The notes under the pieces: generated by a model
What the model was told of the DNA's origin: nothing
What the model saw: the letters and a program-made list of their open reading frames with translations, nothing else
The model's database searches: none
Position numbers and translations under genes: made by a program
Shown here: positions 27,710 through 52,221 of the stretch, one piece after another
Layout: each line of letters opens with the position of its first letter
Numbering within the stretch: the stretch's first letter is position 1
Source of the DNA: Epiperipatus broadwayi
Lineage: Eukaryota > Animalia > Onychophora
Direction: 5' to 3'
NCBI GenBank assembly: GCA_028023455.1
Contig: JAQFVV010000002.1
Location: forward strand, 5,580,001 to 5,644,000
DNA: 64,000 nucleotides

Positions 27710-28628
27710 CTGAAAATATAAAATATAAACAGATATATATTTAATTTCCCTCATAAAACATATAATCATGCATAACAATTCAAGTAACACATTTTTATTC
27801 TATAAAATAAACATTTTCTAATAAAAATATATGGGAGATAATAGAGGTAGTTATTAATAAAACACAGTTCAATTAAAAATAAAAATATTTAAAAAATAAT
27901 AATAAAATAAACTAAAATTAATAAAATTATTGTCACCCAGCAATCCAAAACCAACAAATTTTAAGTATGGTAAATGCATTAATAAAATAATAATTATAAT
28001 AAAATCAGCATTAATACTAAATAGAAGTATATATAATAAAACAAAATCAAAATTAACAGATAGTTAGATATACAGTTTATAGCATTTTGGGAAGCCAAAA
28101 TGATATCTAAAAGTTATAGACTAATATTTATAATTAGTAATCATAAAACAAAATTTATATAGCTGACTGCAGTTTCATCTTAGTTATACATATACATATC
28201 CAATATTATCTACAGAAAGCTATAGAGAAGTTCAGGGCAGATAATAATATATAAGAAGATATTTGCTAATTAAAAGTAAGCAACTTGGAATTTTGAGCAT
28301 TATACAGACGAATGTTTTTTTCATTTTTTAAAATTACTTTTTGATGCTGTGGTTTCTTAATAGATTTAAAGTTTTTGAAAGTTATGTTGTATATTACATA
28401 TATCTTTGTAAATGCAAAGATTCAAATTATAAATATATAAAAATTTGATATTTGTGAATTTTCAAGTAAATCAAGATGCCAATGCATATTTTTGATGAAT
28501 CTACAGTTTTGGGGATTCCCAAAAAATGTTTACAAAAAAAATGCCTGTTAGAAAACATTATATTTATAAATATTGACGTTTTATTTTTTATTATTGTTAT
28601 TTTAAAAAAAGAAATCACTGGGGAAAAA

Positions 28629-28712
28629 AAAAAAATAAAAAAAAAAAAAAAAAAAGGGAAGGAGGGAAGAAGAAAAAAAAAAAAGGAGGAAAAAAAAAAA
28701 AAAAAAAAAAAA

Positions 28713-28758
<46 letters not shown>

Positions 28759-28907
28759 GGGGGGTGGGAGAAAAAAAAAAAAAAGAGAGGAGGGAAAAAA
28801 AAGGGGGAAGGAGGAAGAGGAGAAAGGGGGAGAGCAAGGGAAAAGAGAAGAGCCCCCCAGACCCCCCCCTGAGGGGGATTAATCAAGCTGGGAAGAAGAA
28901 GAAGAAG
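28629..28907 (+). mobile_element. Short 5'-truncated retro-insertion ending in (GAA)n, flanked by a 36-bp direct duplication
   Basis: ATTGTTATTTTAAAAAAAGAAATCACTGGGGAAAAA occurs at 28593-28628 and 28908-28943. The insert ends ...ccccctgagggggattaatcaagctgg(gaa)5ga; the rest is low-complexity A/G. Confidence 0.6.
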
Positions 28908-29282: not shown

Positions 29283-29975
29283 AAAGAAAAAATCTCCACC
29301 TGAAAGAATATACAACTACAAACCCATTATATAACACGTCAACTATACTAATATATTTGCATGATATCAACTCTCTAACGCCCGATAAAGTCATATTCCA
29401 TTATGCTAAGCTCAGTCCTCTTTTATCTCAGGTTTAAAGCCGCTCTCAAAAATATATTTACCTTGTTATATTATTAGAAAAAAATAAATAAATGTAATAC
29501 TCACACAAGGAAATAAGTTATAAAATAAATAGATAAATATTTATTAACATTTACAAATCAGTGTTTCTTAAACCCCATTAATCCACCACCGATTGCACAA
29601 ATAAAATATATATATATATTATTTAATCTATTCTCCTCACATCATAATATAATTAGAGTTGTTTACTTTGGGAGTTCTCTCTCTTAATTCATTAAAATGT
29701 TTGGATGAAGTAGTCTGAGTTCTATACACATACACACATAAATTAGGCATTACAATAAGTCATATTATATCAATAAATGTTCAATCGTACATGTATGCTC
29801 ATTACTACATTCATTTTACAATTTAATAATATTTTAGAATTGTGTGTTGATATACACTCCAAGTACATAAAGAAACAAAATAAAAACATCATTTTATGTG
29901 TTTTATCTTCATTTAATTTAGATGCTTTTGAATGATTTTAAACATTAATAACATATGATTTAAGACGCAATACTC
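29283..29975 (-). repeat. Distal part of the probable 3' LTR of Gypsy element 2
   Basis: Collinear direct repeat of 37650-38289 (e.g. aatctccacctgaa, aactatactaatatatttgcatgatatcaa, aaatcagtgtttcttaaaccccattaa, taataacatatgatttaagac). Confidence 0.75.
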
Positions 29976-31381
29976 ATCTTATAGTTACATACATTTTTTT
30001 AAGCTAAATGTAGATTGATGATTAACATGAAAGAATCCTGCACATAGCAGATGATTTAACATACATGTACTAGAGTGATAAATAAATTTGCTAGCATAAT
30101 TAGATTTTAAACAAGTGATAGATGTATAACACAAACACATAAATAATATTTAGGAAAACCAATATAAAATGATTAAGGTAGATATTATCCTCCGGTGTGT
30201 TGAGACTTCATTCGGACTTGGGGTCTCTGAACGTGCTATAAATCTGGTCAATAGGGTGGTAGGGACTTCCTTCTTAACACTACATCGATCTGGAAAACTT
30301 CATCATCATCACTGGCTGGACTTGGGTGGCTACATTTCAATGACTTGGACGAAGGTGAACAAGAGCACTGAAATGGGCTACTACCCCATAATGCTCTCAC
30401 TGGTTGATGTCTAAATCGATGCTGTGGTAATCACATGAAAACTGCTATTTGAGCTTTACTAAAAAGGATTTTCTATAGAGACTCGGCTCTATGACCTTTC
30501 TTCTTGCTTTAATAAGTCAATTATTTTTTTTTAGTTTAATGCTGTTTAAATATTATTCTTGCTTTAATGTAATATTAACAGTACACGTCTTCTGAATTGC
30601 GACCTGAATATGAGGTCATCACAGCATATAATTGGAAATTTTTAGACAAGGGACAGGAGTTCATTAGCACGGCAAGATTTCAGCAACCTCAATCTTTTCC
30701 ACAATGACTGCAGCAATAATCATAAAATTACTATGTCTAGTGCTCCATAGCAATGGTAGTCTTTATAAGTCACCTCTGCATTAAATTTGGAGTGATGAAT
30801 AATTGAGGCAACCAAACATATAAGATTAGTAAGTCAGCAATGATCACGCAATACTAATATAATCTAATAAGGTAAGATCTCTCTGACCATGACTCTGGAA
30901 TATCTCTCAAGAAGATCAGTCCAGCACCTAGTAAACAGTATATATAGCCCCTCCATTACACAGTCAATTTGGATACCCCTCTTGAATAATTGCCTCAAGC
31001 TTTATTTTGATGGCTAATTGATTTAAGCAATGCACATAATTTTCTTTTAAAGAATTTCATCTTTAATTACTTTTTTTTTTAATTTAATTTTATGGGTTGA
31101 CTCAGACCACTCTATGGATAAACATCAGTTTAAAATTTTTTTATACAAAAAATATTATTTTGCAATGGATTACAACTAAAATATCTATATAACAAATAAA
31201 CAAAATTTTTCTATATATACATTGGCGTCCGAATTCTTCGAACTCTTTTGTTTGTAAAAATAAAAATACAAAGCAGGATGACCATTAATACATTAGTGTA
31301 TTTTTATATTCGGTAAACAATGGCCACCTGACTTTTCTTAATGCATTAGCATAGACAATCTGATAATTGAAAAATAAAATA

Positions 31382-37649: not shown

Positions 37650-38289
37650 CTGTACAGAACGAATCTCCACCTGAATGGATATATAACAAACTCATTATAT
37701 AACATATATAAACTATACTAATATATTTGCATGATATCAATTCTAATGCCCGATAGTCATATTCCATTATGCTATGCTCAGTCCTCTTTTATCACAGGTT
37801 ATAAAAAAAATTTAAAGCCACTTTCAGAAATATATTTACTTTGTTATATTATTAGAAAAAAATTAAATAAATGTAACATTCACACAAGGAAATAAATTGT
37901 AAAATAGTAGATAAATATTTATAAACACATATAAATCAGTGTTTCTTAAACCCCATTAACCCACCACTGATTGCACAAATAAAATAAAAATAGTATATTA
38001 TTTAATCTGTTCTGCCCATATTATAATATAATTAAAGTTGTTTACTTTGGGAGTTCTCTCCTTCAATTCATTAAAATATGCTTGAAGTGGTCTGAGTTAT
38101 AAGTCATATTATATCATTAAATGTTCGATCATACATGTATGCTCATTCCTATAGCCATTCCACAATTTAATATTTTAGAATCGTGCACTGATATACACTT
38201 CAAGCACACACATTATCTTTACTTAATTTAGACAAATTTGAATGATTTTAACCATTAATAACATATGATTTAAGACATACATACTCATC
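37650..38289 (-). repeat. Surviving 3' part of the 5' LTR of Gypsy element 2, cut by the Penelope insertion
   Basis: Adjacent to the PBS; homology to 29283-29975 stops at the Penelope junction (catc microhomology at 38286-38289). Confidence 0.75.
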
Positions 38290-38457
38290 CCATTACCCAT
38301 CCCTTATTTATACTCCAATATTCATTATTATATTTAAAATATAAACTATTATTTATTAGGTTCAATGCTTCATTTATAATACTAATTATGCTATCATCGA
38401 TATATAGAGATAAAGCCTTTATGATGATACTAATACTTTTAATTCTAGGGATACTAG

Positions 38458-39790
38458 CTGATATTATTGGTTATGGACAATATTGTATAAAAAATACAGA
38501 GGCTATTATTGATAAATTAAATATGATGAATATAAATAGAAACCACAGTATCTTTGTGATGGACATAGAATCGATGTACCCTAGTATCCCTAGAATTAAA
38601 AGTATTAGTATCATCATAAAGGCTTTATCTCTATATATCAATGATGATAGCATAATTAGTATTATAAATGAAGAATTGAACCTAATAAATAATAGTTTAT
38701 ATTTTAAATATAATAATGAATATTGGAGTATAAATAAAGGATGGGTAATGGAATGGGATGCGCGATTAGTGGGCTTATGGCATCTATGTTCATTAATGAC
38801 ATGGAAATCAATATTATAAAAGGCAGTATAATTAAAAATGAAGTACTACATTATTTTAGATATGTAGATGATAGTTTGATAATTGGTAATAAGAGGGCAA
38901 TATATAAATTATATAAACAATTTAATAATAATGTTGATAATATTAGATTTACTATGAAAGAAATTGATAATGAAATAAGATATTTAGATATTGAAATTAT
39001 TTAAAATCAAAATAATGATATTATAATTAAGCATTTTATTAAAGATTATAAATTAAGGAAAATTATATCAATTGATTCAAAACAACCATGGATACAAAAG
39101 ATGAGTGTAATTAAGAATTTTAAATATAAGAATGATAGATTTAATACAGATAGAAATATTGCTATGTTACCGAAGGATAAATTTAAACAAACATATATGG
39201 GATATGGATATGCAGCGCATAGTATTGACAATATATTTTCACAATATGGGGTAAATAACACGAATAATAATAGATGTAGGACTAATAAACAAAAGAAGTG
39301 GATAAAAATTTCATATTTGCCTAGTGTATATAATATATTAAATAAAAAAAGTAAAAATTATATAGATAAAAACATTAATGTGGGATGGGCTAATAGCAAA
39401 AATTTGGATAAATTGATAACTAATTGTAGGATGAAAGATGATATAAAATATAAGAGAGGAATGGTTTATAAAATTAGATGTAATTTTTGTAATATGGTTT
39501 ACTATGGCCAGACGTCAAAGCAATTGGGAGAAAGAGCTAAAGAACACAATGATGCTATTGCTAGGAAAGATGATAGATCTGCGTTATATGTTCATTATTT
39601 GCAGTACGGACATAAAATAAATTGTATTGATAATATAAGTGTTCTTGATTATATTAAAAATGTTAATAGACGTAAAATATATGAAACAAACTATATCATG
39701 TATAATAAAAACAACTGTATGAATATATACAAAACATCCATTAAGTTAAATAATAAGTGGTTAATGGATAAAGAATGGATAGTTAATTAA
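38458..39790 (+). pseudogene. Penelope-like RT and GIY-YIG endonuclease ORF with two lesions
   Basis: FVMDIESMYPSIP; KGWVMGCAISGLMA after removing a 5-nt duplication at ~38751-38755; YFRYVDD; RYLDIEI; thumb SKQPWIQKMS; GIY-YIG GMVYKIRCNFCNMVYYGQTSKQLGERAKEH...SALYVH...KIYETNYI. One in-frame TAA at 39002-39004. Confidence 0.93.
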
Positions 39791-39959
39791 TTAATATATG
39801 TGGATATATATCCATTCAATATATATAACAGAATAATTTTGTAGTAGAATTTAGGAAAAAAAAAATCACATAATAGATCATGTCAGATGTCCATTTGTTT
39901 ATCTGTCTTCTCTCATGTATTGATATAGATGTCGCTGTATGTGCTTTAAATCGTGGAGA

Positions 39960-40009
39960 CATATTGAAAAGGGCAAAAAACATAATTTGCCGAAAAAGGC
40001 TTTTCTATG
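39960..40009 (+). ncRNA. Minimal type I hammerhead ribozyme, U3:A8 core variant
   Basis: Stem I CATA (39960-63)/TATG (40006-09); core TTGAAAA (39964-70) plus G; stem II GGCAAA/TTTGCC with loop AAACATAA; GAAA (39992-95); self-complementary stem III AAAGGCTTTT; predicted cleavage after UUC (C40005). Located in the PLE 3' region, where hammerheads are expected. Confidence 0.72.
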
Positions 40010-42432
40010 ATAATTTTATAATTTGTAATATTTATTGCTTATATATATATGTATTTTTAAACATATTTGACTATTGTATACTTGAAGTGCAACATAAAAA
40101 AGAATTGGTTTTAATTCTGATTCTTTTTTTGTATAGTAATATAATAAACAAAGATGCAAACAATATATTATAAAGCTTGAAATTATAAAATTATTTTTTT
40201 AAATCAATTATAATAGTATTCACATTACACAGAAATATTACAATAAAAATCATAAATTACATTTAAAATAATTCTAATGAGAAGAATGAACCTGAGATAT
40301 TGATATCAATTTATTAATGTTTTGTTCTATTTTTATAGCCTCATTATTAAAAGAAATTGACTATAAATAGCTAATCAGTGTGATTTAAGAAAATCACAAT
40401 GATTAGCTATTTGTAGTCAATTTATTTTTTTGCTTAACAGATTTGTCACCACACTAAAATTATATTCCACAAAATATAGTGAAACAAATGAAATTAAAAT
40501 TTTTTGTATTATAATTCATAATCAATTATCGGTTTTTGGCTGATTAACCCATCTTTAAATTTAATTTCAATTGCTGATTTGCCATTAGTTCTATCACTTT
40601 TTCTTATAATTTTTAAGTTTTTTCTGTGTTTGTATTTGAAAATAGGTAAGAAATTTATTGGACATATGCATTTTTAAGAATATCTTCAAATTACTGGTTA
40701 AAGTCAAAATGGAGAGTCTCCAAGTAGAGACAATAATAAGCAAGTCTTCATTATGTTTTTCTAATGTAAATAAATGTAGAAACTTGCTGAATTCCCCATA
40801 TCCTATATTTCTCTTACATAAAATTTTTACTACAAATGAGAAAATAATACTTTTGTTTTGATTAAACTCAGTTTACTGCTTTGAAGCGGTAGGTTTGATT
40901 CATTAAATTGACTACATAAGACTGTCAAAAATCCATGTCGGGTTCAAAATCAATAGCAGACACTGATTGAGTCAATGAATTTATAAATGGACACCTTTTG
41001 ATAGTCAATGAACTTTGACTGAAGCAAATTAAGTAATTAAATTAATTATCATTTTCAATATAAAGTTTTCCAGACAATCTGTCATTCTATAAGTTGCTTT
41101 TGATTTTGTTGATTGCTTTAAGAATACAATAACTTATGTAGATATTCACTCAGATTTTTGGCAACTAAATATTCACAAGTGAATACTTACAGAAATGCTC
41201 TTTGTAAATATACATACAATCCAGCCCCCCCCCCCTCACAATTCTAACTAAGATATATTCAGGAGATGTCTTTTTGTTTAATTAAAAAACTTATAATGCA
41301 TAAAATATCAATTCATCTATAATATAAGTTTGCAAAAGGCACATAAAAATGCTTGGAAATTTTTTTCTTTTATGAATCATATATATGCTAAAAATTAAGG
41401 CTTTATTGGCCAGAAAAATATTGGCTCAATCTCTATACAGAATTGGTATGTTTTAAATTCTTATATTACTGAAAAATCATATAGCATAGTGCATTTTATC
41501 TTACTCATAGCTGGTAGAATTAATTCCTCATCAATAATATATAATTTCCTAACTGAGTGATCAGTAATGAAATATTGCAAGAAATGTGCAACTTATTGTC
41601 ATTTTGTTTATATGCCAATGAAAAACTTTTTGAGAAAGTCAACTTTCTCAAACATTTTTCTTTGACTGATTAAATATAAGATAAATCTTTGACTTTCTTA
41701 TCAATATAAAATTTTGTCAAGCATTACAATTTCATTTGATAGAACTTTTTGGCAAATCAGCAACACTGTCAGTATATTGACTGCAGGCACCCAAACAAAG
41801 CCATAGTTCAAATTATTCAATACTATATTCTTAATAACTTTTTTCTTAAGTCAGCCATAATTAATTATCCGTAAAAAAAGAGTAAACTTTATGTATATAT
41901 TTATCCTAATAGGAGTATAAAATTACCAAGAAATGTAAGAATTTATATAATTGAAAAGCTACAATTTCTTTTGCTGAAATGAAAACTGTTTACAATAGTA
42001 GCAGAACCCATGATATACTACGTACACAGAGGATTTTGCATAAGACAGCAATGGTAAAAAAAAAATAATGAAACTAATAAATTGGGACTTGTTATTTGCT
42101 CAGTATTAGTTATATATATATGACATTAAATTGTCAAATATCAAATTAACTTTATCAAGAAATAATTTTAACAAATACATTAATACACAAAAAAATATGT
42201 TAATAGTTTTAAATTATCTTATCCTTGTTTAAATAATTTTTCCTTACTAACACACATTTTACGAATTAACATAGACAGATCAGTAGATATTAATAAATAT
42301 AATAATTAATAGTCTATTTATGATTCCATTTCCCTAAAGTAATAAAAAATATGACAAATATATTGACTATTTCAACAAAGTACTGACATAAGTCTGCTAC
42401 AATTTTACACTAGAAGACACAGAAATTTATAT

Positions 42433-43149
42433 TAAATAAGATATTTATTTTATATAGCGAGATGTTTTTAAACTGTAATAATAATTAGCATTAAGCTAAT
42501 GCACGTGCGCTTTGGGGATTTAACTATAAATAAATACTCTCATTTTTTCAAACACAAGATAAAGTCTTTGTGAAAAGATAGGATGAATCCATCTATCCTT
42601 TCAACCCAATGTTTAAGTAAGGGTAAATCTTAAGTATTTAAAAATGAGAGTGTGAAGATATTAACAATCACTTTAAATTACCTTTACTATGTCTGAATGA
42701 ATGATGCTTGCAAAATTTACTAGAATTTAAAATATGTCATTCTTAGTTGAAATTAAACATATATAAATAAGATATTTATTTTATATAGCATGATGTTTTT
42801 AAACTGTAATAATAATTAGCATTAAGCTAATACACATGTGTTTTTGGGATTTAACTATAAATGAATACCCTCATTTTTTCAAACACAAGATAAAGTCTTT
42901 GTGAAAAAATAGGATGAATCCATCTATACTTTCAACACAAACGTTTAAGTATGGGCAAACTTTTAAGTATTTGGAAATGAGAGTGTGAAGATATTAACAA
43001 TCACTTTAAATTACCTTTACTATGTCTGAATGAATGGCGTTTTCAAAATTTACTAGAATTTACGGTACGTCATTCTTAGTTGAAATTAAACATGTAAATA
43101 AAATATTTATTTTATATAGCGCGAAGTTTTTAAACTGTAATAATAATTA
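42433..43149 (+). repeat. 331-bp tandem repeat, ~2.2 copies
   Basis: The unit start taaataa(g/a)atatttattttatatagc occurs at 42433, 42764 and 43095. Confidence 0.92.
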
Positions 43150-46297: not shown

Positions 46298-46815
46298 TTA
46301 AGCCAATAAACATCACATGACCATCACTTCTTATGCTTGCTTAAAACTGTTTTAAAACAGGCAAAACTCACTATACATATTGCCACACACAGCAAGCTAG
46401 AGTAATCAATGGATGCCAGAAGGTTTGTGCATAAAATCCCCATCTAGTACCTACTTATTCAATATCCCCAGACTAGTTCCTGGCTTATGGCCTTTGTCAG
46501 TGAAATCCTTGGATCTGAGAGCACTGCACCTAGATCTTAGGATCTAATGCAACCTCTAGCAACCACCATTTAGTTCCACTTAACTACAAAACTATGAGTC
46601 TTAAACTGAAAACAAAATCCAAGCTCATTAGCTTATATAGTCATATGGGTCTAAACTCAGTTCAGTATCCATACATTTTGGTGTCTTTGGTTCTTTAAAA
46701 ACCATAGCCACGCCTCTACCCTATTAGGCAGGATTGCTTTTAAGCCAATAAACATCACATGACTACCACTTCTTATGCTTGCTTATAACTGTTTAAAAGC
46801 AGGCAAAACTCTCTA
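46298..46815 (-). repeat. ~455-nt monomer family, ~1.15 head-to-tail copies
   Basis: ttaagccaataaacatcacatgac...cttcttatgcttgctta...caggcaaaactc occurs at ~46298-46372 and again at ~46740-46812. The body is the reverse complement of 50074-50585. Confidence 0.88.
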
Positions 46816-47379
46816 CACGTTGTAACAGTCAAGTTTGTACATTCGCATAACAGAATTCAGAATCCAAGCAAAAGAGACCGAAGCTGACCAGACTAGGACT
46901 GTGACATCCCAAGTCCGACCACACTTCAACTCATAAGCCAGTACTCCAAGACTCAAGACCCTAAAGAATGACCACCTTGAAATTACACATAGCATACTCC
47001 TTTATTCGCGGCCGACATAGGTCAGGGAGAAACAATGAGACTCATAATTAAATTACAAATTGATCGTAACTAACGAATAGCTAACTTAATGGAGACCTTT
47101 AATAATGCATATTCTATAACATAATGAGAATTGGATTGAATAATGAAACTGAGAGTGGACTAGGTTAATTTACTAAAGTTTAATTTCTTCAATAATAAGT
47201 TTTATCTAAGATATATATATACAAATTTTACACATGTAAAAATGCACACAGGCATTTAATGGCTGAAGAGTTTGGACAGATTCTTTGGTAAGATTAATAA
47301 ATAAATTTACATTTTAAATAAGATGAACGCAGAAGTTATTCATCTTACAATTTGTATACAACTATTTTACGAATTTATA

Positions 47380-50073: not shown

Positions 50074-50585
50074 TAAGCCAGAAACTAGTCTGAGGATATT
50101 GGATGAGTAGGCACTAGAGGGGAATTTTATGCACAAGCCTTCTGGCATCCATTGACTACTCTAGCTTGCTGTGTGTAGCAATACATATAGTGAGTTTTGC
50201 CTGTTTTAAAAGTTATAAGCAAGCATAATAAGTGGTGGTCATGTGATGTTTATTGGCTTAAAACCAATCCTGCCTAATAGGATAGAGGTGGCCATGGTTA
50301 TTAAAGAACCAAAGACACTAAAATGTAAGGATACTGAACTGAGTTCAGACCCATATAATTATATAAGCTAATGAGTTTGGATTGGAGACATTAAGGTGTT
50401 TTCAGTTTAAGACTCATAGTTTTGTAGTTAAGTGGAGCTAAAAGGTGGCTGCTAGAGGGTTGCATTAGAGCCTAAGATCCTGAGTAGGCACTAGATGGGG
50501 ATTGTATACACAAGCCTTCTGGAATCCATTGATTACTCTAGCTTGCTGTGTGTGGCAATACATATAGTGAGTTTTGCCTGTTTTA
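50074..50585 (+). repeat. ~455-nt monomer family, ~1.3 copies with an internal ~80-nt deletion and a different start point
   Basis: gagtaggcactaga...cacaagccttctgg.atccattga.tactctagcttgctgtgtgt.gcaatacatatagtgagttttgcctgtttt occurs at ~50104-50206 and ~50482-50585. An inverted 15-nt piece (tattgccacacacag, 50059-50073) sits at the 5' junction. Confidence 0.88.
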
Positions 50586-50849
50586 ATATTGGATTACAAA
50601 ATTTTACTTTATTTAATACTAATTTTAATAAAATTATTACTTAATTTTATATAGTAAGTATAAATTTATGGACATTCAGAAATAATTTCAATAGCTTTAG
50701 TTGATTATTTGATACCGCTTTTCTTAGTTCACTGAGAGCACAGAATAAGAATAGATGATATAAACATTGGTACGTAAAGATATAATTATTTTGTATTGTT
50801 AATAGTTTAATAAATAGAGGTAAATGATATTGAAATAACAGATAAGAGG

Positions 50850-51747: not shown

Positions 51748-52221
51748 ATTGTTAATATCTTTACACTCTCATTTCCAAATATTTAAGATTTGCCCATACT
51801 TAAATGTTTGGGTTGAAAGGATAGATGGATTCATCATATATTTTCACAAAGACTTTATCTTGTGTTTGAAAAAATTGAGAGTATTCATTTATAGTTAAAT
51901 CCACAAAGCGTATGTGCATTAGCTTAATGCTAATTATTATTACAGTTTAAAAACATTGCGCTATATAAAATAAATATCTTATTTACATATAAAATAATTA
52001 TCTTATTTACTTATGTTTAATTTCAACCAAGAATGATGTATCGTAAATTCTAGTACATTTCGCAAGCGTCATTCATTCAGACATAGCAAAGGTAATTTAA
52101 AGTGATTGTTAATATCTTCCTACTCTCATTTCCAAATACTTAAAAAGGATAGATGGATTCATCCTATTTTTTCACAAAAACTTTATCTTGTGTTTGAAAA
52201 AATCAGAGTATTCATTTATAG
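51748..52221 (-). repeat. 331-bp repeat family, ~1.5 units in inverted orientation
   Basis: Reverse complement of the 42433-43149 unit (tttcacaaagactttatcttgtgtttgaaaaa, gcattagcttaatgctaattattattacagtttaaaaac). Confidence 0.9.

Follow-up and report, generated by a model that had tools for sequence, protein, structure and literature searches.

Minimal hammerhead ribozymes have been described from the terminal repeats of Penelope-like elements (PLEs) by Cervera and de la Peña 2014 (PMC4209133). [quoted passage not shown] A U3-A8 covariant occurs in the Cercyon PLEs of Schistosoma mansoni, where a descriptor with a U3-A8 core gave about 1,300 matches (PMC4209133). Natural covariation to U3-A8, bacterial hammerheads included, was reported by Perreault et al. 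2011, and variants that covary at positions 3 and 8 have already been proven active in vitro (PMC3088659). For the PLE of Anolis, Frangieh et al. 2024 found that either C3G or G8C kills the ribozyme and that the C3G/G8C double mutant is partly rescued; cleavage of this hammerhead requires the PLE protein, and insertion of the PLE in vitro is independent of cleavage (PMC11167929). The function of hammerheads in PLEs was described as unclear by Craig et al. 2021, and the hammerhead-less Naiad PLEs proliferate to very high copy numbers (PMC8557442).

The window, by which we mean the whole 64-kb stretch of DNA that was analysed, contains a complete minimal type I hammerhead motif at 39960-40009 on the + strand (Table 1). 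The initial annotation had listed every part of such a motif around the core UUGAAAA, and all of them could be placed. For minimal hammerheads, the core rule asks for U4 G5 A6, A9, G12 A13 A14, an A15.1-U16.1 pair and any nucleotide but G at position 17; the corresponding letters here are TGA at 39965-67, A at 39970, GAA at 39992-94, the A 39995-T 40004 pair and C at 40005. Positions 3 and 8 are occupied by U3 (39964) and A8 (39969), which are compatible with Watson-Crick pairing and represent the published U-A covariant of C-G. Helix I is open and comprises 4 bp (CAUA/UAUG) with mismatches at the neighbouring positions, giving a type I topology and a length within the 4-5 bp of PLE motifs. 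Helix II has 2 bp if read in strict register and a clean 6 bp, within the published 6-8 bp, once G 39971 is left unpaired and G 39972 pairs with C 39991 (G10.1-C11.1). The pairing of GGCAAA with TTTGCC that had been proposed for stem II is therefore upheld, but the unpaired G ahead of it had gone unmentioned. The DNA letters of the helix III segment, 39995-40004, are AAAGGCTTTT.

Table 1. Features of the hammerhead motif and of the element that carries it (window coordinates).
Feature	Position	Strand	Remarks
Inverted 5' fragment of the element's own RT region	38283-38455	-	Reverse complement of 38582-38757
RT remnant, 5'-truncated	38456-39004	+	YVDD in ORF piece 38741-39004
C-terminal GIY-YIG-type endonuclease ORF, 229 aa	39101-39790	+	
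Helix I, 5' strand CAUA	39960-39963	+	Pairs with 40006-40009
Core strand U3 U4 G5 A6 A7 A8 A9 (UUGAAAA)	39964-39970	+	
Unpaired G between A9 and G10.1	39971	+	
Helix II, GGCAAA/UUUGCC	39972-39991	+	39972-77 / 39986-91; 6 bp from G10.1-C11.1; 8-nt loop 2
G12 A13 A14 A15.1 (GAAA)	39992-39995	+	
Helix III segment AAAGGCUUUU	39995-40004	+	Self-complementary; A15.1 to U16.1
C17, last base of the TTC triplet	40005	+	Predicted cleavage 40005/40006
Helix I, 3' strand UAUG	40006-40009	+	Pairs with 39960-39963
3' tail of the repeat unit downstream of the hammerhead	40010-40172	+	A-run/U-run hairpin ~40092-40127

The descriptor with which we scanned both strands of the window accepted any Watson-Crick 3:8 pair and an optional bulge; it required G10.1-C11.1, 5 bp or more in helix II, 4 bp or more in helix I and self-complementarity in helix III. 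It matched one site in the 64 kb, 39960-40009, and none in 300 first-order Markov shuffles; it was built from published features but after the site had been seen, and the shuffle figure is to be read as a guide and not as a probability. Within the 64-kb window there was no further hammerhead and no further copy of the element. A version of the motif pattern with N at positions 3 and 8 yielded no matches in metagenome and viral contigs. Rfam returned no hammerhead at the gathering threshold for the whole window and none at E<=10 for 39800-40200. As a control we used the canonical CUGAAGA PLE minimal hammerhead of locus L001, described below, and since this motif was likewise missed, the Rfam models do not cover the minimal architecture. 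The motif had been called hidden from searches, and Rfam is indeed blank at the site, but the U3-A8 core is not the sole cause, as the control shows. Searches with the CUGANGA pattern and with Rfam models both overlook such motifs, and hammerhead counts in animal genomes are therefore underestimates.

The features shared with the Cercyon minimal hammerhead of Schistosoma mansoni are the location in a PLE terminal repeat, the short helix I, the long helix II, the unpaired nucleotide between 9 and 10.1, the G10.1-C11.1 pair, the palindromic helix III and the U3-A8 core, together with a high copy number consisting mostly of single motifs from truncated elements. Judged by the features described for Cercyon, the motif in the window differs in its longer helix III, with 10 self-complementary nucleotides and two G-U pairs, and the window has a GC content of ~27%. 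Newt satellite 2 and Schistosoma Sm-alpha (Forster 1988, Ferbeyre 1998, cited in PMC4209133), as far as they are summarised in the citing paper, share an unstable helix III and a palindromic loop, and two of their units must pair into an active double hammerhead; they differ in their C3-G8 core, in the loop-loop contacts between helices I and II and in being tandem satellites or SINE-like repeats. The U3-A8 hammerheads of Perreault et al. (PMC3088659) share the compensated core pair, whereas their architectures and hosts are different and they are not borne by PLEs. Poseidon (PAc) of Anolis (PMC11167929) likewise has its hammerhead in the PLE pseudo-LTR; its own features are that the role of the 3-8 pair has been shown by mutants, that the core is C3-G8 and that the motif overlaps the start of the ORF.

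The initial annotation was right in stating that PLE terminal repeats carry minimal hammerheads and that U3:A8 is a known covariant, both of which are in print (PMC4209133, PMC3088659). The type is not newly uncovered, as U3-A8 minimal hammerheads of PLEs with the same architecture and dimer logic were already published (PMC4209133). Since all of its features are in print, the motif in the window represents a new family member rather than a new kind, and it adds one high-copy, recently active family to the published U3-A8 hammerheads of PLEs.

The element upstream of the motif retains parts of two protein domains. According to the translations, the reading frame of the RT remnant shifts near 38741-38819 and is interrupted by an in-frame stop at 39002-39004; the remnant gave a weak match to RVT_1 (E 0.0014) and aligned to the RT of the PLE protein P0002 across the RYVDD motif. 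An exhaustive protein search with the 229-aa endonuclease ORF retrieved 2637 relatives at E<=0.001, the best of them at 39% identity; in the long ones, RVT_1 occurs together with GIY-YIG. The block VYKIRCNFC..YYGQT..EHN of this ORF aligned to residues 616-723 of P0002 (E 1e-13), and a Pfam search of the ORF gave no match to GIY-YIG at E<=0.1. By sequence similarity, the locus is the remnant of an endonuclease-bearing PLE in which the RT is followed by a C-terminal GIY-YIG domain. The two inverted arms, 38283-38455 and 38582-38757, differ by 4 substitutions and one 3-nt indel over ~176 nt (~97.5% identity). A 5' truncation with an adjoining inverted 5' fragment is a published footprint of PLE insertion (PMC8557442), and the same arrangement is present here, with the inverted 5' fragment 38283-38455 adjacent to the truncated end.

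The hammerhead starts 170 nt downstream of the stop of the endonuclease ORF and inside the repeat unit, in a position corresponding to the pseudo-LTR region. Word depth was 2-5x10^5 through the bin 40114-40150 and ~100-fold lower from 40151, and because of this drop and of another repeat that begins at 40173, we place the end of the repeat unit ~145-165 nt past the hammerhead. The motif had been assigned to the 3' end of the element; it does lie behind the PLE gene, but that stretch of repeat still follows it, with the depth running to about 40150-40172. The description of the element as young also stands in part, with ~11 of 850 sites deviating from the family majority and arms that are ~97.5% alike, but the copy lacks its 5' part and is disrupted by one frameshift and one in-frame stop. 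It is a recent copy (~1-1.5% diverged) but a dead one. Any activity would consequently be that of the family and not of this locus, because the window holds a dead, 5'-truncated insertion. No second direct copy of 39800-40172, as a direct pseudo-LTR tandem would contain, was present in the 64-kb window; the upstream pseudo-LTR is missing because the copy is 5'-truncated, which is expected in a truncated solo copy.

Two other features of this region were considered. A 97-codon frame at 39880-40173 was evaluated as the start of a PLE protein, as in Poseidon of Anolis, and rejected; it had no similarity to any of 150 PLE relatives and is also broken by common indels of the family (8 nt after 39953, 1 nt after 39974 and 1 nt after 40095). 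The hairpin in the 3' tail, 40092-40127, consists of a ~12-bp stem of an A run and a U run, followed by a T run, and may serve the PLE RNA in recognition or termination. Its best match in Rfam was a bacterial terminator-like sRNA with an E of 0.7, which is meaningless as a family assignment, and the 3' tail overall folds no better than shuffles (z -1.4). ARAGORN and Rfam showed no tRNA-like block in 39500-40300.

Canonical relatives of the motif were found in the genome GCA_030710605.1, in which two PLE loci, L001 and L002, are ~31% identical to the endonuclease ORF of the window over the aligned block. Each has a canonical minimal hammerhead ~245 nt downstream of the gene (L001:13902-13936 and L002:11507-11541). 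In these motifs, CUGAAGA is followed by a single unpaired A, by helix II (6 bp) and GAAA, and then by the palindrome GCU, which is part of AGCU, and by C; helix I is short. The motif in the window follows the same order, with an unpaired nucleotide next to A9, a G-C-rich helix II of 6 bp and GAAA ahead of a short palindrome and C17, and it too lies a few hundred nucleotides behind the endonuclease ORF. In contrast, the core of L001 and L002 is CUGAAGA (C3-G8), their helix III is only AGCU and their helix I has 3 bp. A second canonical minimal hammerhead (CUGAAGA, 7-bp helix II) was seen at L001:2346-2385, ~655 nt upstream of the gene model; its position is that expected of the upstream pseudo-LTR, and the sequence of its helix II is unlike that of the downstream motif.

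We also examined the state of positions 3 and 8 across the family. For this analysis, Logan contigs of four public runs with three species labels were aligned to 39300-40400 at >=80% likeness, namely X1 (DNA, organism A), X5 (organism B), X7 (labelled RNA?, organism A) and X10 (organism C). A total of 3609 contigs from X1 aligned, with a summed word depth of 10^5 to 5x10^5, which indicates that the PLE family is very high-copy. Variants were listed for 40 of 236 places, each listed one reaching ~50% or more in at least one run. Among these 40 of the 236 variant places, no alternative letter was found at 39964 (U3) or 39969 (A8) in any of the four runs, and the differences private to the copy near the motif (39889, 40030, 40034 and 40041) were listed at 90-100%. 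Under three species labels, U3 and A8 thus represent the majority in the PLE family, as read per position and not per copy. The initial annotation had considered two independent decay hits less parsimonious; the majority letters of the four runs speak against private decay of this copy and against CUGAAGA as the majority core.

The only substitution within 39960-40009 among the 40 of 236 variant places listed was 40005 C>A, which turns C17 into A17 and accounts for ~51% of the depth in X1, 37% in X5, 59% in X7 and 0% in X10. Both C17 and A17 are permitted, since G alone is excluded at position 17. In X5 and X7, 20-25% of the depth has an additional A after 39974, which lengthens the A run and leaves the pairing of helix II unbroken. 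With its split of ~50:50 between C17 and A17, the U3-A8 family would be a convenient substrate for testing cleavage by minimal hammerheads. In X7 (labelled RNA?), the summed contig depth over 39892-40039 was ~20 times that of the coding part, the ratio being ~3 in the DNA run X1. The excess hints that the hammerhead end is transcribed or that a shorter, non-coding relative shares it, although depth in contigs measures this poorly and DNA carry-over is possible.

Stem III had been described as self-complementary with G-U pairs and as unable to close in a monomer. The former is borne out by the predicted 10-bp self-duplex of AAAGGCUUUU between two molecules, in which two pairs are G-U and which has an energy of -7.3 kcal/mol. 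The latter needs qualification, as a closure in cis with 3 A-U pairs on a GGCU loop is sterically possible, but its predicted energy is 0.0 kcal/mol, so that it has no predicted stability.

Our preferred reading is that 39960-40009 is a PLE minimal hammerhead motif with U3-A8 as a family-level state, to which we assign a probability of roughly 0.75. The identity of the motif is supported by the PLE RT and GIY-YIG remnants directly upstream and by the PLE-type inverted 5' fragment. That the hammerhead cleaves in vivo has somewhat less than an even chance. Across the PLE family, U3-A8 takes the place of the C3-G8 tertiary core pair. Under the mechanism we propose, two RNA copies would pair via helix III to form an active double hammerhead, as inferred from the families in the literature. 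The paired copies could come from the two pseudo-LTRs of one tandem transcript or from two separate transcripts, and the element's own protein may assist the double hammerhead. Cleavage of both strands behind position 17 (40005|40006) would then trim read-through or multimeric PLE transcripts.

Position-wise conservation of the motif raises an alternative to this reading. With 40 of 236 variant places listed, the 50 nt of the motif contained 1 of these variants and the 140 nt of the tail 3; the motif was thus no better conserved than the tail, nor is it clearly better conserved than its flanks. This would be the case if the hammerhead of the founder had already been inactivated by C3>U and G8>A and was then amplified regardless, the Watson-Crick match being coincidental. 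PLE copies could spread in this manner, considering that insertion in vitro needs no hammerhead cleavage (PMC11167929) and that the Naiad elements are abundant (PMC8557442), and the two changes are of a common type in an AT-rich genome (~27% GC) with G>A and C>T among the commonest differences within the family. All other core positions, G10.1-C11.1 and the three helices are, however, intact, and both changes must have struck the partners of one tertiary pair and left it Watson-Crick. The same U3-A8 combination recurs in the ~1,300 Schistosoma PLE motifs (PMC4209133) and in bacterial hammerheads (PMC3088659), and we consider an inactive founder unlikely.

The folding energies bear on a second alternative, in which there is no hammerhead and an AT-rich 3' UTR contains an unremarkable imperfect hairpin (GAAAAGGGCAAA...UUUGCC...CUUUUC) that resembles one by chance. 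The 50-mer reaches its minimum free energy, -9.1 kcal/mol, in a hairpin that pairs GAAAAG (39966-71) with CUUUUC (40000-05); the hammerhead fold has -2.1 kcal/mol, and shuffles average -4.5 kcal/mol (sd 2.2). This weak hammerhead fold and the lack of a hammerhead match in Rfam count against the preferred reading, as does the poor cutting in vitro of published PLE minimal hammerheads (PMC4209133). A mere hairpin nevertheless leaves unexplained that none of the 300 shuffled windows matched the descriptor and that the corresponding position in PLE relatives holds a canonical minimal hammerhead, which Rfam misses too. Moreover, the common C17>A change breaks the closing G-C pair of the hairpin and is not compensated at G5, yet it is permitted in a hammerhead. 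We therefore regard a chance hairpin as very improbable. For the minimal hammerhead, the modelled energies, those of helix III included, would fit a dimer-dependent ribozyme whose monomer is predicted to adopt this inactive hairpin.

Least probable of all, and in our view extremely so, is that the family is canonical, with a CUGAAGA core, and that this one copy acquired its changes at positions 3 and 8 once it had inserted; the copy is dead through truncation, frameshift and stop and the composition of the genome favours changes from G/C to A/T, but this explanation is rejected because no majority alternative is listed at 39964 or 39969 in the four runs, while true private differences are listed at 90-100%, and at a divergence of ~1-1.5% hits on two named sites are expected in roughly 1 in 10^4 copies.

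Two further ideas follow from the PLE minimal hammerhead with a U3-A8 core, and we jointly rate them as rather unlikely. One is that a single genome may contain separate PLE lineages, recently active and of very high copy number, in which positions 3 and 8 are fixed as C-G, U-A or A-U; if those variants are active, the genome would represent a natural covariation series for the hammerhead tertiary pair. The other is that the A-rich U3-A8 core could act as a switch, with GAAAAG and CUUUUC paired in the monomer and freed on dimerisation.

Another dispersed repeat is present in two copies, 37811-38289 and 29433-29978, which are ~77% alike overall and 88-89% alike in blocks. The copy at 37811-38289 abuts the left edge of the PLE, where the match stops within the first bases of the inverted arm and ATACTCATC is common to both. 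We used the empty repeat copy 29433-29978 in the search for the insertion ends and a target-site duplication, and its match ends at the left edge only. Directly after the end of the PLE, the stretch 40173-40300 belongs to a different repeat; loose ends at 40173 were seen in 25 X1 contigs, and a contig of 1074 nt matches 40173-40284.

Short tandem or near-tandem arrays with units that are 87-95% alike were located at 42433-43149, 50104-50586, 51816-52203 and 46298-46818, with periods of 331, 377, 328 and 442 nt, respectively, and the hammerhead descriptor had no match in these four arrays. A long, purine-only A/G tract of low complexity covers 28604-28850. The locally GC-richer segment 17997-19773 contains a 439-aa open frame with the RT-like motif FAYMDD, followed by a 136-aa ORF, and is probably the remnant of a non-LTR (LINE-type) retrotransposon.
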